A stretch of DNA of 64,000 nt from Schizochytrium sp. TIO01 (GCA_004764695.1 SMSO01000035.1:1302001-1366000), one strand, 5' to 3'; shown: positions 27,148 through 54,432, numbered from the stretch's first letter. A program made the numbers and translations. The notes: generated by a model not told the origin, from the letters alone.

Positions 27148-28686
27148 TTACCGGCCTCCGCGGTTCTCAATCTGCTGCTGATGACCGAAAGTTTTGCCTA
27201 AAAGCATCTCGCGGTCAAACGAATTCTCTGCAAACTTCTTACGATCGACTTTGCGTCTGTCCATGCGCATCTGATCCACTGTTGCAGTCTCGATTGCTTG
27301 AGCTGCGGCTGCATCATCGCCACCAAACCCCCATGCCTCGATGATGAAAGGCTTAAACCCACTTGTGCCGTCAGGATTTGCAGGGCGAAGGTACCCTTGC
27401 TCATATGTGAGATCAAAGTCTGCCGCACGACAGTTTTCAAAATTACGATCAAGCCATAGACGAGGATTGTTCTCGTCACCTCCAAAGCCCAAACCATGAA
27501 TTCCAGACTTACCACGACAACGCAGAAACTGAAAGTGATTTGTGCCTGGCGACGATCCATCCGTGCGAGCACATATCGTTCGAAACGTGGGCCGAAGGGA
27601 AGTCAAAACACTGGAGGACTTACCATAGAACTGCGGTAACTCTTGCCATGTTTCAGATACAAGACCACCAAAAACACTTCCCTCTGCATCTTGAATGACC
27701 ACAAGTGTTGGGCCTGGGTATCCTAGAAGAGCTTTGGCAAGCATATCGAAACTCATTCCTTGTTTGTTACTCGAAAAAAGGAGGTCCCAGCGTGAACTTG
27801 CACGGGAGTCTCCACATGCCAATGCAAATGCATCACATGGACGCACAATCTCGCTCTGCGTTAATGCACTCTGCGAGATATTACCAGCAGCTTTACCATG
27901 TTTTTCAGCACAAAGAATTTTCTCATTGAAAAGTTTATGAAGACCTTCCTGTAAAGACGGGCTTTGAGCACTGCACCACCGATTGAACATGCCAAAGTTC
28001 AAGTTCACCTTTTCAGCTCCATCGATCTTAGCCTGCTTCTCTGCAAAAACTTGGAAACCTGTTACCATCGCGGCACTTTCAAAAGACCCCGGGTTGCCTG
28101 CAGCATGAAACAAAAGTTGAAGAAGCTGTCCAAAGAGTTCTGGTGTAGTTACTGTAGAGGCCCCGCTGCCTTCGCTATTCGGACCAAGTGCACCAGCAAA
28201 AATCGCTCGACGAATGTCGCTCGTGGAACCCCGAACAAGATTAGCAACCACATCAATAAAGATCTCAGTGCTGATACTAGATTCGGTGTTTCCATTCTGG
28301 CGAAATACTCGCGCCAAAGTTGTTGCATCGTCTTCAGCAACTCCCAATACTGCAGCAAGCTTTTTACTGCATACTTCTCCAGCTTTAAAAGATTTGTGCT
28401 GTTTGAGCTCCTTTGAAGCGGAGTTATTGGATGAGTCGTTAGCATCGCTGGAACTCTCTCTCTCAGATGATACTCCAGGAGCAATCGGAGGGGTCGCAGG
28501 TGCTGCTTCTGGCACTGTTTGGACACTTGCAACTGTCACAAGAACTTCTGTCAGCTTCGTGAGTTCGCCATGGCGAGCTCTGATCTTTGCGTAGTCTCCG
28601 TTTTCGAGTAGTGGGTGCTTCCGAGCGCCAGATGAACCCGAATTGCTAGACGCGGAGTCCTTTGTTTTGCTTCCGGTCAGACCCAT
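27148..28686 (-). CDS. TLDc-domain protein (MEAK7/Rtc5-like) with N-myristoylation motif
   Basis: MGLTGSK N-terminus; TLDc motifs WDLLFSSNKQGMSF, GPTLVVIQDAEGSVFGG, GLGFGG and IEAWGFGG. Confidence 0.87.
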   Translation of the reverse strand: MGLTGSKTKDSASSNSGSSGARKHPLLENGDYAKIRARHGELTKLTEVLVTVASVQTVPEAAPATPPIAPGVSSERESSSDANDSSNNSASKELKQHKSFKAGEVCSKKLAAVLGVAEDDATTLARVFRQNGNTESSISTEIFIDVVANLVRGSTSDIRRAIFAGALGPNSEGSGASTVTTPELFGQLLQLLFHAAGNPGSFESAAMVTGFQVFAEKQAKIDGAEKVNLNFGMFNRWCSAQSPSLQEGLHKLFNEKILCAEKHGKAAGNISQSALTQSEIVRPCDAFALACGDSRASSRWDLLFSSNKQGMSFDMLAKALLGYPGPTLVVIQDAEGSVFGGLVSETWQELPQFYGKSSSVLTSLRPTFRTICARTDGSSPGTNHFQFLRCRGKSGIHGLGFGGDENNPRLWLDRNFENCRAADFDLTYEQGYLRPANPDGTSGFKPFIIEAWGFGGDDAAAAQAIETATVDQMRMDRRKVDRKKFAENSFDREMLLGKTFGHQQQIENRGGR

Positions 28687-29007: not shown

Positions 29008-30468
29008 TCAATGATCAGCTGGAGCAACAATTTCCAAGAGATCATGAGCTGCTGTTGATTTCCAAATACCTACAACTTTATCTTTACGGAATCGGAGAAA
29101 TAACTCCCGGTTCTTAGGACGTCGTAAGATCATGTTCATATTGTTATGCGAAAGATCGAGACAGCGAAGTGCGGTTGCTGAGTCGATAGCTTCAGCAAGA
29201 GCCTCCGCAGCTTCCCCAGCTCCAATGCTGTTGTTTGCTAAGTCGAGATCAACAACTGCGTCGTTATCTTGAAGGAAATCTCGTGCAATAGTAATTCCGC
29301 CTTCACGACCAAGATTATTATAACGAAGATTCAGTGTATATATTCTGCGCTGATAGGCTGCTTTGATAAAATGTGTAACTCCCTTTGCCCCAAGCCCACA
29401 ATCATGAAGGTTTAAGTGCTTCAGGAATTGACACTTACTCAGAATTACTGCCAAATACTCACCACCCTCTGGCCCCAAGGGGTTTCCCCGTAGGTCTAGA
29501 TGCTGTAAATTAGCACAACGACTCAAAATTGAGGTGAGAGATTTGAAGCCTACATGCCCAATCTCATTCTTGGGAAGCACAACGCGCTCCAATGTTCGCT
29601 TGTACTTTAATGACTTTGCAAGGGTGTGTGCTCCCTCATCCCCGAAATCAAAGAAAGCCTTTGAGGCGTGTTGCTGCTTCAAGATATGCTCCCACCGCTC
29701 AAGATTGCGCTCAGCCTTAGTCATCACGGATTGCAATTGCGATTCGTATTGATCGCATTGTATTCTACGAAATTCATAAAGTGCATTGTCGTGTTCTTCC
29801 TGAGCTTCCTTCAGTTTTTCGCGAGCCTGCAATCGCCGCCGAGCGCAAGATATCTTTAAGCTAACCATGACCATGTGCTCGTCATCCTGCGTACGAATAT
29901 CAACAATTGCTTCGCGAACAGTTTCTACTTCTACATCAATTCGTTCGCGAGGGTCCTTTTCCTCTTCATCGGAGTCATCGTCGAACTTTTTAGCAGAGGC
30001 ACCTATCTTTAATTTTCGTTTCGAAAGGGCGCTCATGATTGACCTGGCTGATCTCCGAGGCTCTTTATCTATATTATCAGCATTAGGGTCCGCTCCATTC
30101 CCTTGGTTTGCAGCTGTGCTACCTCGTTTTGAACTGGACCTTTTTAGGCTGCTTTTAGATGCAGATCTTCTCAAGCTATTTGCACCTGCGATTTCATCGT
30201 CATCTTTGTTGCTAGCTCTCCTTTTTCCTGAAGAGCTTTTTACACTGCTCCGACGTTCCTCCAAATTCCCATCGTCAATGTTACCCAATCTTGTGTCTTT
30301 GGCAAAGTCCTCGTTGGTGCTTGCACCCTCGTCACTCTTCTTCTTATCATCAGTAACAGCGTCCTCCCTCACTACACCCAAGACTTCTTCGTCTTGGACA
30401 CCTTCCCCTTCATCGCTTTCGCCACCGCTTTTGGCAGATGCACGCTTGTGTCTGCGTGGGAGTCTCAT
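29008..30468 (-). CDS. Ribonuclease-inhibitor-like leucine-rich repeat protein with disordered N-terminus
   Basis: C-terminal LRRs (LQHLDLRGNPLGPEGG, LKHLNLHDCGLGAKGV, LDLANNSIG, LRCLDLSHNNM); ATG at 30468. Confidence 0.85.
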   Translation of the reverse strand: MRLPRRHKRASAKSGGESDEGEGVQDEEVLGVVREDAVTDDKKKSDEGASTNEDFAKDTRLGNIDDGNLEERRSSVKSSSGKRRASNKDDDEIAGANSLRRSASKSSLKRSSSKRGSTAANQGNGADPNADNIDKEPRRSARSIMSALSKRKLKIGASAKKFDDDSDEEEKDPRERIDVEVETVREAIVDIRTQDDEHMVMVSLKISCARRRLQAREKLKEAQEEHDNALYEFRRIQCDQYESQLQSVMTKAERNLERWEHILKQQHASKAFFDFGDEGAHTLAKSLKYKRTLERVVLPKNEIGHVGFKSLTSILSRCANLQHLDLRGNPLGPEGGEYLAVILSKCQFLKHLNLHDCGLGAKGVTHFIKAAYQRRIYTLNLRYNNLGREGGITIARDFLQDNDAVVDLDLANNSIGAGEAAEALAEAIDSATALRCLDLSHNNMNMILRRPKNRELFLRFRKDKVVGIWKSTAAHDLLEIVAPADH

Positions 30469-31408
30469 AGTAACCAAGTCACTCGTTTGTTTGCTTGAGG
30501 TGGGCTCCCAACCTTTGTGAGCGTGGAATTACTATGTCCGCAACTTTGCCCTGAGCAACACATAGATCATGTGAAGTCCTTGTCAACGGCTTTTTTCCTT
30601 TGGTCAGATATGAGTCCCTTTCTTCGCTTGTTGCAGTTTTCACTTTCCTAGCTTGTCCTTAAAGATAAATATGGGCCAAATTATTTGCGAGCGCTGTTAG
30701 GCAAGGGCTCCAGAGCTAAATGTAAGGAGAACAGTGCGATCAATTCTTTGATGTGGCTTGCACCTGCTTCTGTTTCATGTAGAATTACCATTTCAATGAA
30801 ATTATGATGACTATAACGACTAGAGCATCCGTGAAGTATGGTAGGAGTGCGCTCCCTACTTTACATGTTGATTTTATTACTTTATAAGCTTGCAAGATGT
30901 TAAGCAACCATCCCCAATCACTGCAGTTTCTTCTTTGCTTAGTTTTGCTGACAATGTATTCCATCATCAATTTTCCCAGTAGTGAACACAGTCCTTTCAT
31001 TACAATGCGTGCGATTTGGAAAACAGGAAATAGGATCCTTACATGACTCGTTATAATTTTTACGTGTGTATAGTGAGTTCTTAACCTCATTTCCAGGATT
31101 GTTGTTTAAAACTGAGTATTCTGTGTACCTGTCGATTATCCGTTTAGCCTATCTTGAAGGTAGCTGAGCTCTTGTCTTGTTTTTATTTATATATATATTT
31201 TTAATAGAAGTGTGTACTCTTGCTTGCGAATTGTATTCTCAAAACTTTGAACTTCTATGCACTCTCACCTTTGGCCAACAAAGGTTTGCTGACGGACAGC
31301 ACCAAGTGCGCCGTCCACGTCGCTTCGCTTGCATGGCGAAGCATCTATAGTTGCTGCAGAACGAACCACGGAACTGTAGCATAGAGGAACGAGGACTGTT
31401 CCGTAACG

Positions 31409-33202
31409 ATGCAGAAAACCCTGCCTCCACCCTTGTTTCAAGGCCAGGTAAAGACTCCTGAGCAGTGCAACGAGACAGTCAAAGAGTTCTTGGAAAATGA
31501 AGATAATATTCTCGACCCACAACTTCAGGAACTGGAAAGTCTTTATCAACATAAGCTTGTTTTTCAAGAATGTCAACTTCGCGAGCTGAGGGAAAAGCTT
31601 GATGACATAAAATGTGGACGAGAGGAGGATCGCGTCAGGTTTGCGGAAACACTTGCGGAAAAGGACAAAGAGCTTCGCGAGTCTATTGCTTCCCTTGAAG
31701 TCAAGCAAGAAGAGGATGAAAATGCAAGAGAAGAATACGGGGAATATATTCGAAAGCACTATGAATCTGTTGCAAAACAGGTAGAACAAGAACACTCTTT
31801 CGAAATTGCAACGTTGCATGCAAAAATTAATGAGTTTGAGCGCCGTCAAATAGATCGTAATATTTTACAAAAGCAGGCGAGTGAGATAGTCGAGTTAAAA
31901 CGCTCAGCCGAAATCATGCGCGGTGAACTGGCTAACCAAAAGTCAGAGTTCATTGCACAAATGGCCCAGAAAGATGCTGCACACGCTGCAAGATTAGCTG
32001 AGGAAACAAGAGATTTGCGGAATGCCAAAGAAACCCTTACTGAAGCTTTACAAAGTAAGACGATGGAGGCTGTGCATATGGCCCAAAAGGTTGAGAAATT
32101 AGCTGCTGATCGAAATGCATTACAGCACGCATTAGCGGAGGCAAATGAGAAGCTTGGCCCATTGGAGCGTGATATTGCACTCCTGCATCAGCAAGGAGAT
32201 CTTTATGAAACTGAACGCGTCCAAAATGCAGATAGTCTTGCAGGCTTAAATCACAAAATAAGTGAACTGAATACAAAAATTAAAAGTCAGGCTAATGCTC
32301 TTCAGAAAGAAAGGGCGATAATTCGCGTGCGTGAACAAAGTATTCTAAATTTTCAAAATGCACTGTATGAGCTTATGCATAGTGAAGAAAGGGACCAAGA
32401 GGGTCACTTAACGCATGGACTTCTTGAGCTTTACGACAACTTTGTTGCAGGCTCTGAGCTTGAAGCTACACTCGCGGACCCAGACGATGGCCATCTTGGA
32501 CCAGAAACACCTGCAAAATCTATTCAACAGAAACTTCCTGTCCTTGAATTTATGAGACAGCGTCAGGCACTGCAACGTGTAGTTCATTGTAAATCCCGAG
32601 ACGCCAAACGTGCCGAGAGCCAGCTAACACAGCATAAGAGAAATTCCCAGGCACAGCATGCGGTGCTTCTTGCGGACAATAAATCGCTACGACGTCGTTT
32701 AGTTTCGTTAGAGAGAAAAAATAGGCTTATTGAATCTCAGCTATTTCAAAGTAAGCAGCAAGTGGATCAACTGCGTCGTCGCCGCGGACTAACACAAGGT
32801 AAGAACCCAGTCACAAATGCTGGCCAAGCGCGAGTTACAATGATTGATGAAATCATTAACGACGCTCGATCCTGTGCCACGGGGAAGCTCCCCCCGGCAT
32901 CATCTGGAACTCAACCCCCTCCTACAGTTTCTAGTGTCATGAATCCTGCGTTGAATCAGCGAGCTACTGCATTGCAAAGTGAGGTTCAATCTATTTACGA
33001 TGAAGAAGAAGTGGGTTCTCCGCAGTGGACGATGGCTCCCCCTTCGCGTTCTTTAAGTACCTCAAATTTGCGTCAGAAGCAACCACCCATCAAGGCGAAG
33101 GTACCCAAGGTTACTACTAAATCCAACAAAGACCTTCTCGACAGCGATGACGATGAAACGCGACTACAAGACCCTCTTCAACCTTGGTCCCGTCTCCCAT
33201 AA
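31409..33202 (+). CDS. Long coiled-coil protein resembling the C-terminal half of CFAP57/WDR65
   Basis: 597 aa heptad-rich ORF; LYQHKLVFQE, KQVEQEHSFEI and EFMRQRQALQR...LLADNKSLRR recall the CFAP57 coiled coil; 5' end uncertain. Confidence 0.7.
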   Translation: MQKTLPPPLFQGQVKTPEQCNETVKEFLENEDNILDPQLQELESLYQHKLVFQECQLRELREKLDDIKCGREEDRVRFAETLAEKDKELRESIASLEVKQEEDENAREEYGEYIRKHYESVAKQVEQEHSFEIATLHAKINEFERRQIDRNILQKQASEIVELKRSAEIMRGELANQKSEFIAQMAQKDAAHAARLAEETRDLRNAKETLTEALQSKTMEAVHMAQKVEKLAADRNALQHALAEANEKLGPLERDIALLHQQGDLYETERVQNADSLAGLNHKISELNTKIKSQANALQKERAIIRVREQSILNFQNALYELMHSEERDQEGHLTHGLLELYDNFVAGSELEATLADPDDGHLGPETPAKSIQQKLPVLEFMRQRQALQRVVHCKSRDAKRAESQLTQHKRNSQAQHAVLLADNKSLRRRLVSLERKNRLIESQLFQSKQQVDQLRRRRGLTQGKNPVTNAGQARVTMIDEIINDARSCATGKLPPASSGTQPPPTVSSVMNPALNQRATALQSEVQSIYDEEEVGSPQWTMAPPSRSLSTSNLRQKQPPIKAKVPKVTTKSNKDLLDSDDDETRLQDPLQPWSRLP

Positions 33203-33576: not shown

Positions 33577-33650
33577 GGTTGGTTGCTTGGTTGCTTGGTT
33601 GCTTGGTTGCTTGGTTGCTTGGTTGCTTGGTTGCTTGGTTGCTTGGTTGC
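33577..33650. repeat. (GGTTGCTT)n 8-nt tandem repeat directly 5' of the H3 fragment ATG
   Basis: Directly visible. Confidence 0.9.
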
Positions 33651-33774
33651 TGGAATACTTACGGGTTTGCTTGCTGGTTTGAACGACCTCACGCGGAATC
33701 TAATCGCCATACCGAGGAGAAAAAACTGAATTAAGCTAACCTAAGCTAGTCCTGTCACGTGGCATGATTATTCT

Positions 33775-34540: not shown

Positions 34541-34999
34541 CCGCCAAGAAATCAAGGCCGCTCTGCCTCGTCCTCATTAGGAAATAGGAATAATTACTTT
34601 CATATCCGTTAAACAAAAAAATCAAAAAAGTCTCACTTAGAATTGTGTGCGATATCAAATGTATATGTTATTACTACAAAAAGGATTGTGAAGATACTGA
34701 AATCTTGTATCACTATTATTAGTGAAACCCATAAGGTAGTGTTATCACCTAAGCATAACTATTTACGTACCTACTATGCGCTCTCAAGTGCCAATCCAGG
34801 ATCCAAGAATCCTACTTTCGTATTTGAATCCTTCGTTGAACCTTTACTCGTTTCATTTCACACACGCAATGATGGCTACAAATGCGACCATAATTAGTCC
34901 CTGTGCTCCTTCTCATAGTAGTAGACCTCAAACTAAGGAAACTAGGTTGGGCAAGTTGGCAGAATCAGCTTGCCAGCCAAACGTAGAGCTTGCGGCAGA

Positions 35000-37900
35000 A
35001 TGTCTCGACGGTCTCCCAGCCAAGAACGTGAAAGCTACATCGGAACCTTGAGACAAAACATCCCAAATGGACAAGCCCCAAATGATGCTTTTGCATTAGT
35101 TTCCCAAGCCTCTGTCGCAGAGGTCTTCTATCGCAAAATAGCTTCATTATTTCTAGGGATCATGCACCGTCGCCTTTCTGATACGACGTTTCTACGATAC
35201 GCGTGTGCTGAGCTATATCACCTTACTTGTAACAAAGTTCATCTTCGTGAAATTCTTTGTCAAGACCTCAACGCTGGTGCACTTATTCTTCAGGCCATGC
35301 ACAATCACCCTGAAGATGCCTTTTTACAACAGAACGCGTGTCGTGCGCTCTCAAGTATGGCTCTGCATAATTCCCAAAATCGTGAGATTCTTTGTCGAGA
35401 CCTCAACGCTGGTGCAGAAATTGTTGAGGCTATGCGCAATCATTGGGAAAATGTCAATCTACAACAAATCGCGTGTGCCGCGCTTCAGAACTTCACTTGC
35501 GATAGTGCTTGTAATTCTGAGATCCTCTGTCAAGGCCTCAACGCTGGTACAGTTATTGTTCAGGCTATGCGCAATCATTGGGAAAATGTCAATCTACAAC
35601 AAATCGCGTGTGCCGCGCTTCAGAACTTCACTTGCGATAGTGCTTGTAATTCTGAGATCCTCTGTCAAGGCCTCAACGCTGGTACAGTTATTGTTCAGGC
35701 CATGCACAATCACCCTGAAGATGCCTTTCTACAACAGAGCGCGTGTCGTGCGCTCTCGAATATGGCTCTGCATGATTCCCAAAATCGTGAGGTTCTTTGT
35801 CGAGACCTCAACGCTGGTGCAGAAATTGTTGAGGCTATGCGCAATCATTGGGAAAATGTCAATCTACAACAAATCGCGTGTGCCGCGCTTCAGAACTTCA
35901 CTTGCGATAGTGCTTGTAATTCTGAGATCCTCTGTCAAGGCCTCAACGCTGGTGCAGTCATTGGTCAGGCCATGCACAATCACCCTGGAGATGCCTTTCT
36001 ACAACAGAACGCGTGTGGGGCGCTCTCGAATATGGCTCTACTCAATTCCCGAAATCGTGAGGTTCTTTGTCTAGAGCTTAACGCTGGTGCAAAAATTGTT
36101 AAGGCCATGCACAACCACCCTGGAGATGCCTTTCTACAACAGAAGGCATGTGGTGCGCTTGAGAATATGGCTCGCGATAATGTTCCTATCGGTGAGATTC
36201 TTTGCCAAAAACTTGAAGCTGGTAAATACATTGTGGAGGCCATGTGCAGTCACCGTGCAGATGTTATTCTACAACAGAAGGCATGTGGTGCATTAATGCA
36301 ATTCGCTTTCAATAATGCTCAAAATAGCAAGATTCTTTGCCAAAAACTTGAAGCTGGTAAATACATTGTGGAGGCCATGTGCAGTCACCGTGCAGATGTT
36401 ATTCTACAACAGAAGGCATGTGGTGCGCTTGAGAATATGGCTCGCGATAATGTTCCTATCGGTGAGATTCTTTGCCAAAAACTTGAAGCTGGTAAATACA
36501 TTGTGGAGGCCATGTGCAGTCACCGTGCAGATGTTATTCTACAACAGAAGGCATGTGGTGCGCTAATGAAGTTTACTTCAGACAATACAGGTAATTGTGA
36601 AATTCTTTGCCAAAAGCTTGGGGCCGGTAAATACATCGTCTGGGCCATGCGCAACCACCGTAAGGATGCCATTGTACAACAGAACGCGTGTGATGCACTC
36701 TCGAATATGGCTCTGCTTAGTTCTCGAAATCGTGAGATTCTTTGTCAAAACCTCGCTTCTGGGGCAGACATTGTTGAAGCCATGCGCAATCACCGCAAAG
36801 ATGTCATCGTACAGCGGAACGCATGCAGTGCACTCTGGAGCTTTACGTGCAAGAATAGTCGTAACTCTGAGACTCTTTGTCAAGACCTCAGCGCCGGTGC
36901 AGACATTCTGGAGGCTATGCGCCATCACCGTGGAGATGCCATTCTACAACGGCACGCCTGTGGTGCGCTTCAGAACTTAACTTACAATAATGCTCGAAAT
37001 TGTGAGACGCTGTATCAAAATCTAAATGCTGCTGTAGACATTTTGGAGGCCATGCGCAAGCACCGTGAAGACGTCATTGTACAACAGAACACGTGTGGCA
37101 CGCTTCAGAACCTCACTTGCAAAAATGGTCATATCGATGATATTGTTTGTGAAAAGCTTGACTTTGGTGCAGACATTGTTGAAGCCATGCGCAAGCACCG
37201 TGAAGATGCCATTGTACAACAAAATGCGTGTGGAGTGCTTTGGAATATGACGCAGTATAATTCTCGAAATCGTGCGATCCTTTGCCAAAAGCTCAAAGCC
37301 GAAGAAGAGATTATATATGCCATGCGCAATCACCGTACAGATGTCATTGTACAACAGAACGCTTGTCGTGCGCTTTTGAGCTTTGCGGACGACAATGCTC
37401 AAAATAGTAAAACGATTTATCAAAAGCTCGACGCCGGTGAAGACATTGTTCAAGCCATGCGCAACCACGGTGAAGATGTTATTCTACAACAGAATGCGTG
37501 TGCTTTGCTTTGGAATATTGCAGTACAAAACTCTTCTAATAATAAGTTTCTTTGCCAAGAGCTCAAAGCTGGTAAATACATTGTGGAGGCAATGTGCAGT
37601 CACCGTGCAGATGTTATTCTACAACAGAAGGCATGTGGTGCACTAATGCAATTCGCTTTCAATAATGCTCAAAATAGCAAGATTCTTTGTCAAGAGCTCA
37701 ACGCTGGCGAATATATTGTTCAAGCCATGCGCAATCACCGTGGAGACACTATTCTACAACAGCAAGCATGTCGCGCACTTGAAAACATGGCTCGTGATAA
37801 TGCTGATAATCGTAAGATTCTCTGTCAAGAGCTCGACGCCGGCGCAGACATTGTTCAGGCCATGCGTAACTACCGTACAAATGCCATTCTACAACAGAAC

Positions 37901-40900
37901 GCATGCGGTGCACTGATGGAGTTTGCCCTGGAAAATGATCGGAATCGCGAGATTCTTTGTCGAAATCTCAGAGCTGGGGCAGACATTGTTCAGGCAATGC
38001 GCGACCACCATGGAGATACAATCGTACAACAGAAGGCGTGCGCAGCGCTCCAGAACATCTCTTACGGAAATGCTTCTATAGGTGAGAAGCTTTGTCAAGA
38101 GCTCAACGCTGGTACTGAAATTGTCAAGGCCATGCACAATCACCGCACAGACGTCGTCCTACAACAGAACGCGTGCGGTGCGCTTCAGAACATGGCTCAG
38201 CACAATTCTCGAAATCGTGAGATTCTTTGTCAAGAGCTCAACGCTGGGAAACACATTGTTGAGGCCATGCGCAACCATCGTGAAAATGCCGCACTACAGC
38301 AGAAAGCGTGCGGAGCACTTGAGAGCATGGCTCGTGATAATGCTCAAAATCTCGTGATTATTTACCAGACCCTCAACGCTGTTGAAGATATTGTTCAGGC
38401 CATGCGCAACCATCGTGAAGATGCTATAATACAACAGAGCGCATGTGCTTTGCTTCGGGATATTGCACTTCGAAACTCCTGGAATATTGCGTTTCTTCGC
38501 CAAGATCTCAACGCTGGCGCAGATATTGTTGAGGCCATGCGCAGACACCCTGGAGATGTCATTGTACAACAGAACGCATGCGCGGCACTTGTGAACATGG
38601 CTTGCAATAATGCGTCAATTGGTGAGATTCTTTGTCAAGAGCTCAACGCTGGCGCGAACGTTGTCCGGGCCATGCGCGATCATCCTGCAGACGTCATTCT
38701 ACAGCAAAATGCGTGTGGTGCGCTGATGAAGTTTACTTCTCACAATACTACTAATTGTGAGAAGCTTTGTGAAGAGCTCGGAGCTGGTAAAGACATTGTT
38801 GATGCCATGCGCAATCATCGTAGAGACATCATTGTGCAACAGAACGCGTGTGCCGCACTTGCGAACATGGCTCGCGATAATGCTTCTATTGCTACGAACC
38901 TTTGTCAAGAGCTCGGAGCTGGCGCAGACATTGTCCAGGCCATGCGCAAGTACCGTACAGACGCCATTCTGCAAATGTTTGCATGTGCGGCACTTGAGAA
39001 CATGGCTCGTGATAATGATGAAAATAAGAAGATTCTCTGTCAAGAGCTGAACGCAGGAGAAGATACTGTTAAGGCCATGCGCAACCATCGTGGAAATGCC
39101 ACACTACAGCAAAAGGCGTGCGGTGCACTTAAGAACATGGCACGTGATAATGCTCAAAATCTCACAATTATTCATCAAACCCTCCATGCTGGCACAGACA
39201 TTGTTGAGGCTATGCGCAATCATCGTGAAGATACCACTTTACAACAGAATGCATGTGCGTTGCTTTGGAATATTGCACTTCAAAACTCCTGGAATGGTGC
39301 GTTTCTTTGCCAAGCTCTCAACGCTGGCGAAGATATTGTTCAAGCCATGCGCAATCACCGTGGAGACACTATTCTACAACAGAATGCATGTAGCGCACTT
39401 GGAAATATGGCTCGTGATAATTTTGAAAATCAGAACATTCTCTGTCAAGAGCTGAACGCAGGAGAGGATACTGTTGAAGCCATGCGCAACCACCGTGCAG
39501 ATGTTATTCTACAACAGAAGGCATGCGCTGTACTAATGGAGTTTGCCTCAGAGAATGATTTTAACCGCAAGATTCTTTGTGAAATACATAGTGCTGGCGC
39601 AGACATTGTTCAAGCCATGCGCAATCACCGTGGAGACACTATTCTACAACAGCAAGCATGTCGCGCACTTGAAAACATGGCTCGTGATAATGCTGATAAT
39701 CGTAAGATTCTCTGTCAAGAGCTCGACGCCGGCGCAGACATTGTTCAGGCCATGCGTAACTACCGTACAAATGCCATTCTACAACAGAACGCATGCGGTG
39801 CACTGATGGAGTTTGCCCTGGAAAATGATCGGAATCGCGAGATTCTTTGTCGAAATCTCAGAGCTGGGGCAGACATTGTTCAGGCAATGCGCGACCACCA
39901 TGGAGATACAATCGTACAACAGAAGGCGTGCGCAGCGCTCCAGAACATCTCTTACGGAAATGCTTCTATAGGTGAGAAGCTTTGTCAAGAGCTCAACGCT
40001 GGTACTGAAATTGTCAAGGCCATGCACAATCACCGCACAGACGTCGTCCTACAACAGAACGCGTGCGGTGCGCTTCAGAACATGGCTCAGCACAATTCTC
40101 GAAATCGTGAGATTCTTTGTCAAGAGCTCAACGCTGGGAAACACATTGTTGAGGCCATGCGCAACCATCGTGAAAATGCCGCACTACAGCAGAAAGCGTG
40201 CGGAGCACTTGAGAGCATGGCTCGTGATAATGCTCAAAATCTCGTGATTATTTACCAGACCCTCAACGCTGTTGAAGATATTGTTCAGGCCATGCGCAAC
40301 CATCGTGAAGATGCTATAATACAACAGAGCGCATGTGCTTTGCTTCGGGATATTGCACTTCGAAACTCCTGGAATATTGCGTTTCTTCGCCAAGATCTCA
40401 ACGCTGGCGCAGATATTGTTGAGGCCATGCGCAGACACCCTGGAGATGTCATTGTACAACAGAACGCATGCGCGGCACTTGTGAACATGGCTTGCAATAA
40501 TGCGTCAATTGGTGAGATTCTTTGTCAAGAGCTCAACGCTGGCGCGAACGTTGTCCGGGCCATGCGCGATCATCCTGCAGACGTCATTCTACAGCAAAAT
40601 GCGTGTGGTGCGCTGATGAAGTTTACTTCTCACAATACTACTAATTGTGAGAAGCTTTGTGAAGAGCTCGGAGCTGGTAAAGACATTGTTGATGCCATGC
40701 GCAATCATCGTAGAGACATCATTGTGCAACAGAACGCGTGTGCCGCACTTGCGAACATGGCTCGCGATAATGCTTCTATTGCTACGAACCTTTGTCAAGA
40801 GCTCGGAGCTGGCGCAGACATTGTCCGGGCCATGCGTAATCACCGTACAGATGTCATCCTTCAACAGCGCGCGTGTGGTGCGCTACGAAACATGGCTCAG

Positions 40901-41599
40901 TATAGCTCTCGAAATCGTGAGATTCTCTGTGAAGAGCTCAACGCTGGCGAAGACATTGTTAAGGCCATGCGCAATCACTGTATAGATGCCATTGTTCAAC
41001 AGAACGCGTGTGGTGCGCTAATGAAGTTTACTTCGAGCATTACTTATGCTTGTAAGATTCTCTGTCAAGAGCTCAACGCTGGTGCTGACATTGTTGAGGC
41101 CATGCGCAATCACCGCACAGACGCCACTCTTCAACAGAATGCGTGTGGTGCGCTTCGGAACATGGCTCAGTACAACTCTCTAAATCGTGAGATTCTTTGT
41201 CAAAAGCTCAAAGCTGGCGAATACATTGTTGAGGCCATGCGCAACCACGAGGAAGACGCCACTGTACAACAGGACGCGTGCGGTGCGCTCTCAAATATGG
41301 CTATGCTCAATTCTCGAAATCGTGGGATTCTTTGTCAAAAGCTCGACGCTGGAAAATACATTATCAAGGCCATGCGCAAGCACCATGAAGACGCCATTGT
41401 ACAACAAAACGCATGTGCTGCGCTTTGGCACTTTACATATGACAATGATCAAAATCGCACAATCATTTTTCAAGAGCTCAACGCTGGCAAATACATTATT
41501 GAGAGCATGCATAACCACCAAGCAGATGCCAATGTACAACAAAACGCAAGTGCTGCCCTTTCGAACATGCAGATAGAGTTTTTAAATGTATACTTATAG
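35000..41599 (+). CDS. Giant armadillo-type repeat protein (~2200 aa, 47 x 45-aa repeats)
   Basis: Single uninterrupted ORF, first ATG at 35000; consensus LCQELNAGxDIVxAMRNHxxDxILQQxACxALxNxxxxNxxNxEI fits the AMxxH...QxxACxALxNL ARM type. Confidence 0.93.
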   Translation: MSRRSPSQERESYIGTLRQNIPNGQAPNDAFALVSQASVAEVFYRKIASLFLGIMHRRLSDTTFLRYACAELYHLTCNKVHLREILCQDLNAGALILQAMHNHPEDAFLQQNACRALSSMALHNSQNREILCRDLNAGAEIVEAMRNHWENVNLQQIACAALQNFTCDSACNSEILCQGLNAGTVIVQAMRNHWENVNLQQIACAALQNFTCDSACNSEILCQGLNAGTVIVQAMHNHPEDAFLQQSACRALSNMALHDSQNREVLCRDLNAGAEIVEAMRNHWENVNLQQIACAALQNFTCDSACNSEILCQGLNAGAVIGQAMHNHPGDAFLQQNACGALSNMALLNSRNREVLCLELNAGAKIVKAMHNHPGDAFLQQKACGALENMARDNVPIGEILCQKLEAGKYIVEAMCSHRADVILQQKACGALMQFAFNNAQNSKILCQKLEAGKYIVEAMCSHRADVILQQKACGALENMARDNVPIGEILCQKLEAGKYIVEAMCSHRADVILQQKACGALMKFTSDNTGNCEILCQKLGAGKYIVWAMRNHRKDAIVQQNACDALSNMALLSSRNREILCQNLASGADIVEAMRNHRKDVIVQRNACSALWSFTCKNSRNSETLCQDLSAGADILEAMRHHRGDAILQRHACGALQNLTYNNARNCETLYQNLNAAVDILEAMRKHREDVIVQQNTCGTLQNLTCKNGHIDDIVCEKLDFGADIVEAMRKHREDAIVQQNACGVLWNMTQYNSRNRAILCQKLKAEEEIIYAMRNHRTDVIVQQNACRALLSFADDNAQNSKTIYQKLDAGEDIVQAMRNHGEDVILQQNACALLWNIAVQNSSNNKFLCQELKAGKYIVEAMCSHRADVILQQKACGALMQFAFNNAQNSKILCQELNAGEYIVQAMRNHRGDTILQQQACRALENMARDNADNRKILCQELDAGADIVQAMRNYRTNAILQQNACGALMEFALENDRNREILCRNLRAGADIVQAMRDHHGDTIVQQKACAALQNISYGNASIGEKLCQELNAGTEIVKAMHNHRTDVVLQQNACGALQNMAQHNSRNREILCQELNAGKHIVEAMRNHRENAALQQKACGALESMARDNAQNLVIIYQTLNAVEDIVQAMRNHREDAIIQQSACALLRDIALRNSWNIAFLRQDLNAGADIVEAMRRHPGDVIVQQNACAALVNMACNNASIGEILCQELNAGANVVRAMRDHPADVILQQNACGALMKFTSHNTTNCEKLCEELGAGKDIVDAMRNHRRDIIVQQNACAALANMARDNASIATNLCQELGAGADIVQAMRKYRTDAILQMFACAALENMARDNDENKKILCQELNAGEDTVKAMRNHRGNATLQQKACGALKNMARDNAQNLTIIHQTLHAGTDIVEAMRNHREDTTLQQNACALLWNIALQNSWNGAFLCQALNAGEDIVQAMRNHRGDTILQQNACSALGNMARDNFENQNILCQELNAGEDTVEAMRNHRADVILQQKACAVLMEFASENDFNRKILCEIHSAGADIVQAMRNHRGDTILQQQACRALENMARDNADNRKILCQELDAGADIVQAMRNYRTNAILQQNACGALMEFALENDRNREILCRNLRAGADIVQAMRDHHGDTIVQQKACAALQNISYGNASIGEKLCQELNAGTEIVKAMHNHRTDVVLQQNACGALQNMAQHNSRNREILCQELNAGKHIVEAMRNHRENAALQQKACGALESMARDNAQNLVIIYQTLNAVEDIVQAMRNHREDAIIQQSACALLRDIALRNSWNIAFLRQDLNAGADIVEAMRRHPGDVIVQQNACAALVNMACNNASIGEILCQELNAGANVVRAMRDHPADVILQQNACGALMKFTSHNTTNCEKLCEELGAGKDIVDAMRNHRRDIIVQQNACAALANMARDNASIATNLCQELGAGADIVRAMRNHRTDVILQQRACGALRNMAQYSSRNREILCEELNAGEDIVKAMRNHCIDAIVQQNACGALMKFTSSITYACKILCQELNAGADIVEAMRNHRTDATLQQNACGALRNMAQYNSLNREILCQKLKAGEYIVEAMRNHEEDATVQQDACGALSNMAMLNSRNRGILCQKLDAGKYIIKAMRKHHEDAIVQQNACAALWHFTYDNDQNRTIIFQELNAGKYIIESMHNHQADANVQQNASAALSNMQIEFLNVYL
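35255..41599 (+). repeat. Coding tandem array of 47 x 135-nt units
   Basis: Period of 135 nt (e.g. caggccatgc at 35291 vs gaggctatgc at 35426); 47x135 nt ends exactly at the stop codon. Confidence 0.92.
37715..40826 (+). repeat. Internal direct duplication: 37715-38936 recurs at 39605-40826 (offset 1890 nt = 14 units)
   Basis: Identical lines of sequence and identical ORF-track entries offset by 1890 nt. Confidence 0.9.
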
Positions 41600-49847: not shown

Positions 49848-51584
49848 TTACTCGTCAATAAATGTGTATGCTCCAAAGAAATCATCCCCAGCCCAGTGCC
49901 GAGTTGGGATAATTTCTGCAGCAGCCCCGCGAGTCCAGCTTGAAGCATTATACAAATCACCTTGACCCTTAAAAGAGGCTACATAGGGCCATGGATAAAC
50001 AGGTCGAGTCATTGGTGGAAGGGATGACGGAGCCCCAAAAGACCCGCGCTGCCCATTATGTTTGTTATCGCTTTCATTGCTGGGCTCATTTTCATCTGGC
50101 GATGGACTTCCAAATTTCGAAATTGATTCCGTTGAAGAGGTCAAAATGGCATCCGGTGCATGTCCGCTTTCCACCCATGAGAGCATCGCTGTTACAAGAT
50201 CAATATCAGAAGGACCTTGACCAGAACCACAATGAGCAACACCAGGTAGAAGATAAAGTCTTTCGAACGACTCAACTACATCTTTGCCCATGAGGCTTAG
50301 CATTTTTTTATGTAGTGTTAAAGTATTCGATGGGGAAATGTGAGGGTCAGCCATGCCATGCCACATGATCAATTTCCCACCACAACGTTGAAAAGCAGAT
50401 AGATCTGCCATTACTGAGTCGTAGAGAGGATGCCGTGGGCGAAGGTCGGTAAGGGTTGCTTCAGTGAACTCTAAATCTGTTACCTCCATATCCGGACGAG
50501 CAGGGTCAAACGCGAGATATTTTAGCAATGGAGGAACAATATTCATGTACATTAAAGTGCTTTCTTGGCTCTCAGGGACATAAACGCCCTCCCATTCGAG
50601 TTCAGATCCGTACTCAGGTTGTCCAGCAGTAAGATTTGCACCTGTTATGAGATCCTGTGGCCCTGCATATAGTTTCTGGACAACCTGAGCCTCGTGAGTC
50701 GTCAAACAAGTAATGTTGTCAATACTTCCTTCTTCAGAGTCATCACACAAAATATCATTCGGATCAAATTTGCATAATGCAGGCTGGGAAACCAAGCCGT
50801 CTTTAACTCCATCATCCTCATCGCAAGCATCCAATACGCCTTGATGGATGGCAGGAAGTTTTTTAGACATCAAGATATATTCGCCTCTTTTATTCGTGTT
50901 GGAAAGTCCTTGCCAAGCATGATAAAAGGTGTTTTGTACCAGGAAATTCATTGCAGGAGCTCCAGCAATGATACCGTCAAAATCTTCGGGAAAGCGCTCA
51001 GCCTCCATAAGTGCCTCTCGACCTCCATCGGAACAACCATTGAAATAACTGAATGTTGGCGCTTGTCCATAGTATTTAGCAATCAATTTTTTGGCTGTTT
51101 TGGAAACAACATGTTGGGCTCTGTATGCGAAGTCGGCACGTTGTTGATCATTGAGCGCCCAACTTCCATCCTGGTCACCCATCATTCCACCATGACCCAT
51201 ATCTGTTGCAGCCATTGCAAAACCTCCATTCTCAAGGATCTGGCATCCTGATGAAGCTCCAGCGCGGAGTGTGATATTTCCACACAATCCCCCACACCCA
51301 ACCTGCATATAGCGTTGCGTCCATGTTGTTGTGGGCAGGATAACTTCGAATTGAATTTGGGGTGCAAGCCGACCTAAGACTACGCAAAACTCGACACCAT
51401 CACTTATTTCAATCACGGCCGAGCGTACCCGGCTTCCCTCGCCTCCAATGTCCACAAGTTCAAGATCTACTAGAGATTCGCATTGTACTACTGGGGCTAC
51501 AACAGCAAGGTCTTGAGGCCCATATGTGTCTCCAAGTAGAAGTGACACTACCGCTACCGCGATAGACCCGAGACGTTGCAACAT
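49848..51584 (-). CDS. Secreted tannase/feruloyl esterase family alpha/beta hydrolase (paralogue 1)
   Basis: Signal peptide; YFNGCSDGGRE (nucleophile Ser), DFDGIIAGAPA, WHGMADP (Asp) and PGVAHCGSG (His) form the CS-D-HC motif. Confidence 0.95.
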   Translation of the reverse strand: MLQRLGSIAVAVVSLLLGDTYGPQDLAVVAPVVQCESLVDLELVDIGGEGSRVRSAVIEISDGVEFCVVLGRLAPQIQFEVILPTTTWTQRYMQVGCGGLCGNITLRAGASSGCQILENGGFAMAATDMGHGGMMGDQDGSWALNDQQRADFAYRAQHVVSKTAKKLIAKYYGQAPTFSYFNGCSDGGREALMEAERFPEDFDGIIAGAPAMNFLVQNTFYHAWQGLSNTNKRGEYILMSKKLPAIHQGVLDACDEDDGVKDGLVSQPALCKFDPNDILCDDSEEGSIDNITCLTTHEAQVVQKLYAGPQDLITGANLTAGQPEYGSELEWEGVYVPESQESTLMYMNIVPPLLKYLAFDPARPDMEVTDLEFTEATLTDLRPRHPLYDSVMADLSAFQRCGGKLIMWHGMADPHISPSNTLTLHKKMLSLMGKDVVESFERLYLLPGVAHCGSGQGPSDIDLVTAMLSWVESGHAPDAILTSSTESISKFGSPSPDENEPSNESDNKHNGQRGSFGAPSSLPPMTRPVYPWPYVASFKGQGDLYNASSWTRGAAAEIIPTRHWAGDDFFGAYTFIDE

Positions 51585-52731
51585 CTCAACTTACACGGCA
51601 GATTAGCACGTACTTCTGCCGTGTCTTTCCCTTCAGTGTTTCCCGACCTACAAAGTATTGAGGTTTTGCTACACCTTGAAGTGAACCTTTATGCAAGGCT
51701 AGAAATTTCGCCATCATACCAGAAACTTTGAGGTTACTACCTATGAAGAAGAAAGGAAAGAAGTAAAAGAAAAGAAAAGAAAAGAAAAGAGGTAGGATGC
51801 AAAACGATCAACGAAGGGTTGTACCGAGACAAATTCGGTCGCCACTAACAATAGCAGTTAGCTAGTTCTTTTTCTAGGAAGAGATCCCCATCGCGGCTGG
51901 GAAACGATCGCTCTTATTCGTTGCTGAAAGATGCAATCAATGGGGCTGCTTACCTGCTTTCTAGCAGCTTCTCAGCATTTTAGGCATAGTTTAACCCTCA
52001 TTAAGTACAGGCTCAGCAATTAAGAACCGCCGACGAATCAAACTTAGGCCTCAAGGCAAAATCCATTGCTACACTTCGCGACTTCAACCAGTACGTACCT
52101 CCCTACCATCCCCACCCGCGTGAAGGGGCATGAGCCGAGATGCCTGCACAGGGGCATGCGCACGCACGTGCTCAGATCTTCTCAACGAAGGGTCGTAGTG
52201 AGACGACCTGAGCGTAAGCACGTGCGGTGCACTGAAATGCGGAAGATCGGTGGATTCTGCGTGACCAGAAAAAGCACGCTTTGCGCCTGAAAAAAATGCT
52301 TTCGCAAAGTATTGTCAAAATCCACCAGCAAAGTCTTGGTAAAGGCACACTAGCAACACCTTTAGTGCTCTGCTGCCGGACTCATAGTTTTGTTTGCTGG
52401 AGTACGCCTTCAAGTTCATGATAGACATGCGAGATTGATGGTCCGTACAGAGTGAGGATCTAACAAAAGGCTACAGCGACCCAGTATCTGCAAGATGAGA
52501 GGTCGGGAAGAGACGATAAGTGAAGAGCTGAGAATGTCTTGTAAATTTCGATAGTTGAGTGCTCCAGGATACAAGAGATTGGGAGCCGAAGAAGGCAGCA
52601 GATCTTGAGGTAAAGGTTTGGCTGTCCATCCTATGAGGCTTAAGCCTACTAGAATGAGAATGTAAAAGATGACAATCTATTCAGGTTGAAAGAGGGCAAA
52701 AAATTGTTACTTTTGGTTTGGGGCTTAGGCT

Positions 52732-54432
52732 CTATTCATAAATAAATTCATACTTGCCAAATAAATTGGATCCTGGCCATATACGGGTCTTGAGGATTTC
52801 ATTGGGAGGGCCTTGAGACCAACTTGATGCGTTGTACACATCCCCAGTTCCATCGTAAACTGCTGTAAAGGGCCAAGGAAACACCGGACGTGTCATATTC
52901 GGAAGGGTAACAGAGACATTGTACGTTGGGTGGGTATCCTGCGCCTGAGGACCTTCACTGTCAATATTACCAAACGCAGAGTATGTCCATTCAGTTGAGG
53001 CAGTTTCGATTCCTACAGGAGCTTGTTTGGATTCAACCCAAGTCATCATGGCAGTAACAAGGTCCAAGCCAGACGGACCAACACCGCTGCCACAGTGCGC
53101 AACACCGGGGAGCAGGTAGAGCCGCTCGAATCCTTCCACGCGCTCACTCCCCATGACTTGCAACATTCTCTTGTGAAAAGTTAGGGTGTTAACAGGGGAT
53201 ATCTCTGGGTCAGACAGTCCATGCCAAAGAATCAACTTGCCGCCTTTCTTTTCAAAAGCGGACAGATCTGCCATTGTAGCATCGTAAAGAGGAGCAAGAG
53301 TCCGGAGATCATTGAGTGTCTTCTCCGTAAATTCTAAGGTTTCAACAGAGCGATTCGGATCCACAGTAGGGAACGCAAGGTATCGCAGAACAGGGTTCGC
53401 ATAGTCAAAAGATTTCAACGTTGTTGTGGCATCATCCTCCACGTAAACATTCTGCCACTCGAGCTCAGAACCATGCACGGGCTGCCCTGCGGTGAGGTAA
53501 GCCCCGGTGTTATTGTCAGTGGGACCTTTATAGAACTTGTTTACAACGTCAATTTCCTCCTCTGTTAGACATTCCGTGTTGTCGATTCCTTCATCACACT
53601 GAAGAACCGAAGGGTCAAAGCTGCAACGACTAGGCTGAGATATGAGTCCGTCTTCAACCCCGTCATTAGCATCGCAAGCATTAAGAACTGCTCTATGCAG
53701 AGCCGGAAGCTTGTCTGAAAGCAAAATGCCATACCCATCTGCGTCTGTATTAGACAGCGCCTGCCAGCCATGGTAAAATGTGTTTTGAATCTGAAAAAGC
53801 ATCGCTGGAGCCCCAGCAATGATACCATCAAAATCATCCGGAAATCGCTCAGCCTCCATGAGTGCTTCGCGGCCTCCATCAGAACAGCCATTAAAGTAGC
53901 TGTATGCAGGGTCCTGACCGTAAAACATCCTGATCAACTTTTTTGATGCCAGCGACACAATATGCTGAGCACGGTAGGCAAAATCAGCTCGTAGTTGAGC
54001 ACTAACTCCCCATGTGCCATCATTGCCCATGCCGCCACCATGGCCCATATTGGTAGCTGCCATCGCGAAACCTCCGTTATTTAGAGTTTGGCAACCCATT
54101 GATGCGCGTGCATAAAGAGTCACTTCTCCGCACAGGCCACCACATCCTGTTTGCATATACCGCTGCTCCCACGTTTCGGTAGGGAGTAAAAGAATAAATA
54201 TATTCGCTGGGGCAAGTGTTGCGTTGACTACGCATACCTCGACGCCATTGCTAGTGTCGAGGAATACATCATTAATCTTACTACCGAGTCCACCGATGTC
54301 AACAATGTCGATATCAAACAGCTCAGCACACTCCATTGCTGGCTTCACAATGGCAAGATGTTGGGGGTCTTTCTCACCGTCAAACATCAGCGCGACCATG
54401 GCTGCAACTAACGTACTTAGATAGCGCCACAT
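52732..54432 (-). CDS. Secreted tannase/feruloyl esterase family hydrolase (paralogue 2)
   Basis: Same motifs: GCSDGGRE, WHGLSDP, PGVAHCGSG; hydrophobic N-terminus. Confidence 0.95.
   Translation of the reverse strand: MWRYLSTLVAAMVALMFDGEKDPQHLAIVKPAMECAELFDIDIVDIGGLGSKINDVFLDTSNGVEVCVVNATLAPANIFILLLPTETWEQRYMQTGCGGLCGEVTLYARASMGCQTLNNGGFAMAATNMGHGGGMGNDGTWGVSAQLRADFAYRAQHIVSLASKKLIRMFYGQDPAYSYFNGCSDGGREALMEAERFPDDFDGIIAGAPAMLFQIQNTFYHGWQALSNTDADGYGILLSDKLPALHRAVLNACDANDGVEDGLISQPSRCSFDPSVLQCDEGIDNTECLTEEEIDVVNKFYKGPTDNNTGAYLTAGQPVHGSELEWQNVYVEDDATTTLKSFDYANPVLRYLAFPTVDPNRSVETLEFTEKTLNDLRTLAPLYDATMADLSAFEKKGGKLILWHGLSDPEISPVNTLTFHKRMLQVMGSERVEGFERLYLLPGVAHCGSGVGPSGLDLVTAMMTWVESKQAPVGIETASTEWTYSAFGNIDSEGPQAQDTHPTYNVSVTLPNMTRPVFPWPFTAVYDGTGDVYNASSWSQGPPNEILKTRIWPGSNLFGKYEFIYE

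Follow-up and report, generated by a model that had tools for sequence, protein, structure and literature searches.

A 47-unit ARM-repeat gene of Schizochytrium sp. TIO01 and its relatives with MLKL-like bundle and kinase domains

The array gene and its predicted fold

We analyzed a stretch of 64,000 nucleotides from the genome of Schizochytrium sp. TIO01 (hereafter, the window), which contains a single-exon gene for a protein of 2199 amino acids consisting of an N-terminal cap followed by tandem ARM repeats. The open frame begins at position 34970 of the plus strand and ends at 41599, with the first ATG at 35000 and the stop at 41599. The gene is composed of the following parts:

35000..41599, plus strand: complete coding sequence in a single exon, 2199 aa plus stop (ORF list, translation)
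35000..35245, plus strand: N-terminal cap, 82 aa (translation)
35111-35245, plus strand: degenerate ARM "unit 0," the last 45 aa of the cap (translation)
35246..41590, plus strand: ARM array, 47 units of 135 bp or 45 aa each (slicing, TRF)

Slicing revealed perfect register from 35246 to 41590, in agreement with a preliminary description of the locus as one frame with 47 units of exactly 45 aa and no indels, and TRF reported a period of 135 with 45.8 copies and 70% matches. Elsewhere in the window, a 597-aa ORF upstream of the array gene encodes a coiled-coil protein with no Pfam match, and a neighboring gene encodes an MTR4 with 75% identity to that of Hondaea fermentalgiana.

The Pfam scan of the array gene recovered ARM-type families only, namely ARM_LRRK2 (PF23744, 55–73 bits), Arm (PF00514, 71.5 bits), and ZER1-like (PF22964, 41–46 bits), with the curated cut-offs of 20.6 bits for Arm and 26.2 bits for ARM_LRRK2 both exceeded. 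A crude hydropathy scan returned no transmembrane segment or signal peptide, given that the highest Kyte–Doolittle 19-mer scored 1.19 and the N-terminus is polar; the Pfam and hydropathy results together bear out the earlier statement that the protein carries no catalytic domain, signal peptide, or transmembrane segment. Neither the MLKL-like bundle nor the kinase found in the related loci described below was detected in the gene by Pfam scan and tblastn, and tblastn with the N-terminal regions of six paralogues yielded no kinase or four-helix-bundle remnant in the 64-kb window outside the array. A TAL effector-like array was ruled out, because the units are 45 aa long with an ARM fold and no TAL family appeared in the Pfam scan. 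An exact look-up did not recover the protein from the public protein collection, a collection of 5.8 billion protein clusters contained no relative above 43% identity, and no closer fragment was recovered for the C-terminal 400 aa.

An AlphaFold2 model of units 11–18 (8 units; pLDDT 90.4, pTM 0.88) contains three helices per 45-aa unit, with helix 1 spanning positions 43–7, helix 2 positions 10–20, and helix 3 positions 25–40 in unit numbering. Foldseek matched the model to designed or engineered ARM proteins, LRRK2 ARM, APC, and importin-alpha (TM 0.7–0.8), and the top sequence match among solved structures was APC-ARM (E 3e-7). The profile score above cut-off and three-helix units that are predicted to stack as a superhelix place the protein in the ARM superfamily, and the claim of a soluble ARM solenoid is thus backed by Pfam, the structural model, and the Foldseek matches. 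In designed ARM proteins, the groove face of helix 3 forms the peptide pockets, with pocket residues 29, 30, and 33 (PMC11228518). We assigned surface classes in the window gene by combining the limits of the helices and their periodicity with the one-to-one correspondence to the numbering of designed ARM, rather than by computing accessibility. Asn37, the importin-type backbone-binding asparagine, is present in 30 of the 47 units, and Gly or Ala occupies position 33 in most of them; importin-style peptide binding by the groove may therefore not apply.

Unit variation, selection, and recombination

The scaffold proved to be nearly fixed, as had been proposed, with M18, Q28, and L35 present in 47/47 units and L8, A17, A31, and C32 in 46/47. 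Positions 44, 36, 40, 41, and 1 have the highest entropy (3.35 to 2.8 bits). By surface class, entropy is 2.3 bits on the groove face, 1.8 at other exposed sites, and 0.6 in the core, and positions 26, 30, 33, 37, 40, and 44 line up as a variable stripe along a single helix-3 face (permutation p 0.007–0.025). The preliminary description had singled out one hypervariable helix; the helix-3 groove stripe is indeed the most variable, but variation also extends to the outward-facing positions 12, 16, and 20 of helix 2 and to exposed positions of helix 1 (2.0–2.8 bits). Similarly, some of the 9-mers at positions 36–44 recur, as the notion of discrete sequence flavors would have it, yet there are 34 distinct 9-mers among the 47 units and the recurrences are mostly due to an exact duplication within the array.

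The units had also been described as highly similar at the DNA level, which does not hold for the array as a whole: mean pairwise identity is 69% for nucleotides (minimum 55%) and 57% for amino acids, in line with the TRF figure, and high identity is confined to units 1–10 and the 1222-bp duplication listed below. This level of nucleotide identity, combined with a dS of about 0.8, indicates that most units have long been without homogenization or shuffling. Positive selection on the variable sites, which the earlier reading would predict, was not found in the dN/dS between units of the window gene, either at groove or at top-entropy sites: the ratio is 0.39 overall, 0.28 at groove sites, and 0.32–0.36 in the scaffold, and 6 sites chosen for their highest entropy gave 1.1 over all pairs and 0.78 over close pairs. 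Most units are old and their scaffold is under purifying selection, while the surface sites drift, most strongly along the helix-3 groove face and the loop that follows it.

Recombination between repeats, which had been anticipated, is visible but local, and its traces fall into three segments:

35246..36595, plus strand: units 1–10, young mosaic block with exact repeats of 97–161 bp at offsets of 1–3 units
37715..38936, plus strand: exact 1222-bp duplication, copy 1, from part of unit 19 to part of unit 28
39605..40826, plus strand: exact 1222-bp duplication, copy 2, from part of unit 33 to part of unit 42

Within units 1–10, thirds of units are 98–100% identical to differing donor units (best donor per third), and the last third (codons 31–45, the variable end of helix 3) has been swapped independently of the remainder. 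The two 1222-bp copies start 1890 bp (14 units) apart and are 100% identical, such that units 20–27 equal units 34–41 at every nucleotide; the ends of the copies lie near codons 14–16, and identity in the flanks falls to 55–85%. These patterns show that the array has grown, and is still occasionally remodeled, through unequal crossing-over or gene conversion among its units.

The window gene itself could also be viewed as an actively diversifying cytosolic receptor, the specificity of which is rewritten by repeat shuffling. Such a reading would draw on the mosaic of units 1–10 with its separately exchanged last third, the very recent duplication of a 9-unit block, the placement of the variable stripe on a single helix-3 face, and a greater share of nonsynonymous variants at the groove (62:8 nonsynonymous to synonymous, versus 148:48 elsewhere; Fisher p 0.026). 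We nevertheless consider it improbable, in view of the divergence between units, the groove dN/dS, the absence of signaling and effector domains from both the gene and the 64-kb window, and the distance to the nearest relative (no closer than 43% identity among the protein clusters searched).

A family of related loci with kinases and MLKL-like bundles

A search of the genome produced 138 matches at 25 or more related loci, which are partly organized in tandem clusters and include recent duplications. The expectation that paralogues would be fused to signaling domains was borne out: at least 19 loci encode an MLKL-like four-helix bundle and a protein kinase ahead of a homologous ARM array. The kinase domain was recognized in 9 of 10 N-terminal extensions of paralogues (E 1e-31 to 1e-50), and many of the family kinases retain the VAIK, HRD, and DFG motifs and hence seem to be active enzymes, in contrast to the pseudokinase of MLKL. 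For the giant genes on C24 and C30, the N-terminal parts were placed by search coordinates only. The loci constitute a lineage-specific, heavily expanded family in this thraustochytrid-like protist, with a core architecture of MLKL-like bundle, then kinase, then ARM array. The window gene is a member of an ARM-only subfamily, which also includes paralogues on C36, C13, and C35 with N-termini that can be aligned by eye with its cap; a cap common to the window gene and three other ARM-only genes suggests that the ARM-only architecture is stable. The tie between the window gene and the kinase-bearing relatives runs through repeat homology only, and no relative lies within the window.

The assignment of the N-terminal domain as MLKL-like draws on several agreeing lines of weak-to-moderate strength, because chance Z scores for helical bundles often reach about 13. 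When the model of a paralogue N-domain (pLDDT 84.5) was compared with 48,161 chains, the two best matches were MLKL N-domains (Z 11.6 and 10.4), and the alignment with AtMLKL3 spans both the bundle and the brace. The paralogue N-domain further matches an Atlas MLKL_N cluster at 0.90, and an outside homologue, P0008, combines Pfam MLKL_N (E 1e-14) with a kinase and ARM repeats. Pfam searches of paralogue N-domains with E values up to 1 recovered MLKL_N in 1 of 7 paralogues (E 0.12) and nothing else, and Foldseek with the N-domain model gave no match at E ≤ 0.001.

Kinase-deleted remnants lie at C30:5215679-5216101 and C31:4196360-4196851, and their existence raises the question of whether the window gene is likewise what is left of a kinase-ARM gene that has lost its kinase and is decaying, or else an array inflated by repeat mis-assembly. 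A repeat mis-join could produce the exact 1222-bp duplicate, and the failure to find the exact protein in the public collection would fit this explanation as well. We regard it as very unlikely, however, since an open frame of 6.6 kb, uninterrupted by stops or frameshifts at 45% G+C, could not be maintained by chance, the scaffold dN/dS reflects constraint, the N-terminal cap is conserved with the three other ARM-only genes, and no kinase remnant occurs anywhere in the window.

Several paralogous arrays are much younger than that of the window gene, among them those at C24:4.430-4.439 Mb, C30:5.209-5.216 Mb, and C34:4.354-4.361 Mb. Over codons 1–40, nucleotide identity between units amounts to 94% on C24, 88% on C30, and 89% on C34, and some of the young arrays vary almost solely at groove sites. 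In codon alignments obtained by fixed-register slicing of codons 1–40, with the set of groove sites fixed beforehand, two young arrays yielded groove dN/dS values of 3.41 (CI 2.41–6.86) and 1.75 (CI 1.45–2.19). The "high internal conservation" repeats of fungal NLRs are characterized by unit identity over 80% (PMC12222747), a value that the arrays on C24, C30, and C34 surpass and the window gene does not attain. The window gene thus departs from the resemblance to high-identity fungal NLR arrays suggested in the preliminary description: its identity is too low, diversifying selection on a few binding-surface codons was not found, and, being ARM-only, it has none of the effector modules that at least 19 paralogous loci join to their arrays.

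The family may also consist of housekeeping or regulatory scaffolds with no role in non-self recognition, that is, of ordinary kinases with regulating or localizing ARM repeats, such as LRRK2 and ULK4, or of ubiquitin-ligase substrate receptors, such as ZER1 and ARMC5, with the surface variation of the window gene reflecting relaxed constraint. This would agree with ARM_LRRK2 and ZER1-like being the best Pfam matches, with the variation of every exposed site class in the window gene beyond the groove alone, with its dN/dS at or below about 1 everywhere, and with kinase motifs that suggest active enzymes. Yet a set of at least 25 loci, partly in tandem, with recent duplicates and kinase-deleted remnants, is atypical for scaffolds; dN/dS of 3.4 and 1.75 at pre-chosen groove sites of young arrays speaks against this explanation; and the N-domain of the paralogues, as modeled, resembles a membrane-permeabilizing executioner domain. 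On balance, we judge the housekeeping explanation to be rather unlikely.

Proposed role and comparison with known systems

The explanation that we favor, with modest confidence in all of its parts jointly, is that the window gene encodes an intact, soluble, giant ARM solenoid of a cap and 47 three-helix units and is an ARM-only member of the family. ARM repeats are classic peptide binders, and the protein would bind extended peptides or protein surfaces along the helix-3 groove, like importin-alpha, APC, and designed ARM. It may share a pathway with its kinase-bearing relatives, in which case it would serve as a free recognition, adaptor, or decoy module rather than as a self-contained, actively diversifying receptor.

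The preliminary description had cast the gene as a diversifying recognition receptor, and part of this proposal stands, namely the stripe on the groove face, the local recombination, and the existence of bundle- and kinase-bearing paralogues with dN/dS above 1, whereas the window gene itself is old and diverged. Since the window gene is one of the ARM-only members, the immune-sensor reading has partial support at the level of the family but is weak at the level of this gene. We tentatively raise the possibility that the family represents an undescribed system of innate immunity or non-self recognition in protists, in which a hypervariable ARM array, diversified via concerted evolution together with selection at its helix-3 groove, would control an MLKL-like permeabilizing bundle and kinase, and in which ARM-only members, such as the window gene, might work as sensors on their own, as decoys, or as a store of repeat cassettes. 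The literature searched contained no earlier description of MLKL-kinase-ARM proteins or hypervariable ARM arrays, and no natural receptor family that diversifies fast and is based on ARM repeats is known to us.

Dozens of ARM arrays occur in the genome. Several are near-identical between units save at the groove, and many are joined to a bundle of the cell-death type and a kinase. A role of the family in recognition would mean that stramenopile protists, too, use the "repeat sensor plus executioner" design known from animals, plants, and fungi, here with a sensor fold new to it, and modular ARM pockets for peptide binding would then be available as natural examples. The window gene marks the old, diverged end of the family spectrum and provides a useful contrast and an entry point to the family.

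Compared with canonical ARM binders (importin-alpha, APC-ARM, beta-catenin/p120, and designed ARM), the window gene has the same three-helix unit and superhelical fold. Each of positions 1–42 in its units has its counterpart in the 42-aa repeat of designed ARM, including a DAG/NAG turn at 9–11 and the helix-3 Asn37. The matched ARM proteins of solved structure have roughly a dozen repeats or fewer, whereas the window gene has 47 (48 with the cap unit), in 45-aa units without any indel, and differs further in the replacement of Trp33 and the incomplete retention of Asn37. LRRK2 ARM, ZER1-like, and ARMC5 are the nearest Pfam families, and LRRK2 likewise pairs ARM repeats with a kinase; in contrast to LRRK2, however, ANK, LRR, ROC-COR, and WD40 are all absent here, the related family places the kinase before the ARM array and after a four-helix bundle, and the window gene has no kinase. 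As in MLKL and plant MLKL-like proteins, an N-terminal helical domain precedes the kinase in the paralogues, which differ in their long C-terminal ARM array and in the catalytic motifs kept by several kinases; the window gene is without both bundle and kinase.

TAL effectors share with these genes long arrays of fixed-length units with few variable positions, although their units are 33–35 aa long, of another fold, and at least about 90% identical, and read DNA through two variable residues. In common with the WD40, ANK, and TPR sensors of fungal NLRs (HET-E/D, NWD), the tandem repeats are remodeled by unequal crossing-over and variation is concentrated on the predicted binding surface, and the arrays on C24, C30, and C34 come closest, with 88–94% unit identity and dN/dS above 1 at few codons. 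The repeat type is ARM, however, and the partner is a four-helix bundle and kinase instead of a NOD module, and the window gene stands further apart through its lower unit identity and the lack of positive selection. In the immune-system reading, the family would be an ARM-based counterpart to the fungal high-internal-conservation NLRs and to the plant CC-NLR and MLKL executioners.

The ARM-only gene and its surroundings

The armadillo (ARM) gene lies in a eukaryotic assembly of 64 Mb (37 contigs), within a window (G000:C34:1302001-1366000) of ~45% G+C and low coding density whose other genes are typically eukaryotic (myosin head, MTR4 helicase, Rsa3, a TLDc protein, and three tannases); the MTR4 neighbor is 75% identical to Hondaea MTR4, suggestive of a labyrinthulomycete of thraustochytrid-like type. 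Window features are:

27148-28686 (-), TLDc-domain ORF, close upstream of the ARM gene
29008-30477 (-), LRR_6 (RNI-type) leucine-rich-repeat ORF, close upstream of the ARM gene
31409-33202 (+), 597-aa ORF directly upstream, on the same strand as the ARM gene, rich in coiled-coil-like sequence; no Pfam match and no similarity to the family N-domain (below)
33579-33651, perfect microsatellite (TTGGTTGC) x 9, located in the ARM gene's upstream spacer
34970-41599 (+), open frame of the ARM gene, first ATG at 35000
35111-35245 (+), degenerate unit directly preceding the array
35246-41590 (+), 47 perfectly in-register units, every one 135 bp (45 aa) long
49848-58227 (-), three tandem tannase/feruloyl esterase paralogues (PF07519, E 1e-121 to 1e-128)
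61932-62018 (-), tRNA-Thr(TGT) call of 87 nt, exceeding standard tRNA length; it may contain an intron

The array was recovered by Tandem Repeats Finder (period 135, 45.8 copies, 70% matches), ARM-type families alone matched the gene in Pfam (ARM_LRRK2, Arm, and ZER1-like), and a crude hydropathy scan revealed neither a membrane segment nor a signal-peptide-like N-terminus, in keeping with the preliminary description. The ARM fold was borne out by an AlphaFold2 model of units 11-18 (pLDDT 90.4, pTM 0.88), for which the remaining in-register stretches of the same array served as the alignment, and by Foldseek matches with TM up to 0.8 to engineered or designed ARM proteins, the LRRK2 ARM domain, APC, and importin-alpha. 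The solved structure closest in sequence is APC-ARM (E 3e-7). Each modeled unit has three helices, spanning position 43 to position 7 of the next unit (helix 1), 10-20 (helix 2), and 25-40 (helix 3). Unit positions 1-42 correspond one to one to the consensus of the 42-aa designed ARM repeat (turn 9-11, A31, A34, L35, N37, and A39). In designed ARM proteins, helix-3 residues, e.g., 29, 30, and 33, of adjacent repeats make specificity pockets (PMC11228518).

Variability, remodeling, and selection in the window array

Core positions are nearly fixed, with M18, Q28, and L35 invariant across units, and the invariant scaffold is therefore real. Entropy peaks at unit positions 44, 36, 40, 41, and 1; mean values are 2.26 bits for the groove, 1.80 for the remaining exposed positions, and 0.57 for the core. 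The variable helix-3 sites 26/30/33/37/40/44 form a single face (permutation p 0.007-0.025), so groove-face variability stands; helix 2 likewise has a variable outer face (12/16/20), and a single hypervariable helix was thus an overstatement. Units had also been described as highly similar in DNA, which is wrong: mean pairwise identity is 69% for nucleotides and 57% for amino acids.

Recombination of repeats was confirmed. A 1222-bp segment (37715-38936) recurs exactly 14 units downstream (39605-40826), both ends of the duplication lying close to unit codons 14-16, with identity in the flanking sequence dropping to 55-85%. Units 1-10 are mosaics whose thirds are 98-100% identical to differing donor units (the start of unit 3 resembles unit 4 and its end unit 5; the start of unit 8 resembles unit 10 and its end unit 18), and two-unit duplications of older date persist at 78-85% identity. 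Unequal exchange therefore built the array and still remodels it occasionally; the bulk of the array has gone without homogenization for a long time. The mean best match of units is 85% inside the gene versus 65% in other genes, and the array therefore expanded within its own gene.

Nei-Gojobori counts over units gave a dN/dS of 0.39 for all sites and all pairs (pS 0.50, dS ~0.8). The six highest-entropy sites, a biased choice because made by entropy, reached 1.1 over all pairs and 0.78 over close pairs, with 0.32 at all other sites (all pairs). The helix-3 groove set fixed beforehand (26, 29, 30, 33, 36, 37, and 40) gave 0.28, with synonymous sites close to saturation, and codons 1-40 minus this set gave 0.36. 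Relative to synonymous variants, nonsynonymous ones are somewhat more frequent at groove sites (Fisher p 0.026), which fits relaxed constraint equally well as selection. Neither the counts over units nor the variant ratio gave positive evidence of diversifying selection, and the proposed positive selection is unsupported for this gene. The preliminary observation was largely correct, and its interpretation holds for fold, groove-face variability, and recombination; the role of the gene and its family is one that we infer.

A family combining bundle, kinase, and ARM array

A 450-aa array query returned 138 matches at no fewer than 25 loci of the same genome, in open frames of up to 3031 aa. A protein kinase domain was detected in 9 of the 10 paralogues with an N-terminal extension (E 1e-31 to 1e-50), and a search with one extension found the same N-domain and kinase at at least 19 loci, including the 3031-aa frame on contig C24. 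GxGxxG, VAIK, HRD, DFG, and APE are retained in several of the kinases and lost in others.

The ~220-aa N-domain preceding the kinase was modeled as a helical bundle (pLDDT 84.5). Among 48,161 solved chains, its top two matches were MLKL N-terminal domains, 6ux8_A (Z 11.6, rmsd 2.9, 129 residues) and 4btf_A (Z 10.4), followed at lower ranks by NRG1.1 CC-R, AtMLKL3, Rx-CC, and HET-S, although helical bundles easily score middling Z. Foldseek retrieved MLKL executioner domains (probability 0.85-0.99) with non-significant E-values, and a language-model search ranked the MLKL_N cluster first (0.90). Pfam MLKL_N reached no better than E 0.12, in 1 of 7 paralogues, but E 1e-14 in P0008, an outside homologue likewise ordered bundle-kinase-ARM. 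We consider the N-domain MLKL-like with moderate confidence.

The window gene has neither bundle nor kinase, and no remnant of either occurs within the 64-kb window. It shares a short N-terminal cap and the 45-aa period with ARM-only genes on contigs C36, C13, and C35, which makes ARM-only a stable subfamily rather than a broken gene. At C30:5215679-5216101 and C31:4196360-4196851, only short N-domain and kinase-ARM-linker remnants precede two long ARM arrays; here the kinase was apparently lost by deletion, which shows a possible route to ARM-only genes. In a further paralogue, L033:1871-5650 (G000:C13:6283870-6287649), the N-terminal helical domain is apparently joined straight to the array; no kinase domain was found, the first 271 aa giving no Pfam hit. 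Tandem bundle-kinase-ARM clusters, several copies with in-frame stops, occupy G000:C30:173000-245000 and C30:735000-754500 (L027-L029), and two of their hits, identical in score and 5298 bp apart (C30:182802-183437 and 188100-188735), suggest that a gene was duplicated in tandem very recently.

Outside this genome, the nearest proteins are of kinase-ARM type (38-39% identity), namely a "Protein kinase, putative" of Hondaea fermentalgiana and P0001, whose N-terminal 660 residues are 99% identical to the C24:3.41 Mb paralogue and which therefore belongs to the same or a very close species. ARM-only relatives in other samples are 23-29% identical, and the protein collection searched contained nothing near-identical to the window gene.

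Young arrays

The search for fused paralogues proposed in the preliminary description led to the more interesting outcome, a large family of MLKL-like bundle, kinase, and ARM array, with hypervariable young arrays; no paper on it was found in the literature collection searched.

Unit identity and dN/dS in young arrays; gene conversion depresses scaffold dS and unit pairs are non-independent
Array; unit nucleotide identity; groove dN/dS (bootstrap CI); dN/dS at the rest
C24 (L021); 94%; 3.41 (2.41-6.86); 0.81
C34 (L030); 89%; 1.75 (1.45-2.19); 0.48
C30:5.21 Mb (L023); 88%; 0.84; 0.66
C31:3.71 Mb (L025); 82%; 1.16; 0.52
C30:0.18 Mb (L028); 91%; 1.11; 0.82

Differences between units are nearly confined to positions 26, 29, 30, 33, 36, 37, and 40-43 and the first residue, and, with whole-array dS as the reference, groove dN is raised 2- to 8-fold in the four arrays tested (L021, L030, L023, and L025). 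At C24:4430304-4439270 (-) (partly L021:3320-10000), one 3031-aa frame comprises the MLKL-like N-domain, kinase, and ARM array, with at least 45 units in the portion read. Its 34 core units share 94% DNA identity and vary almost only at helix-3 groove codons (dN/dS 3.4 versus 0.8 elsewhere), making this gene the best candidate in the family for a diversifying sensor.

Sensor repeats of high internal conservation combine units more than 80% identical with a few hypervariable codons (PMC12222747). The window gene departs from this description, whereas the young arrays of the family show both >80% unit identity and few hypervariable codons.
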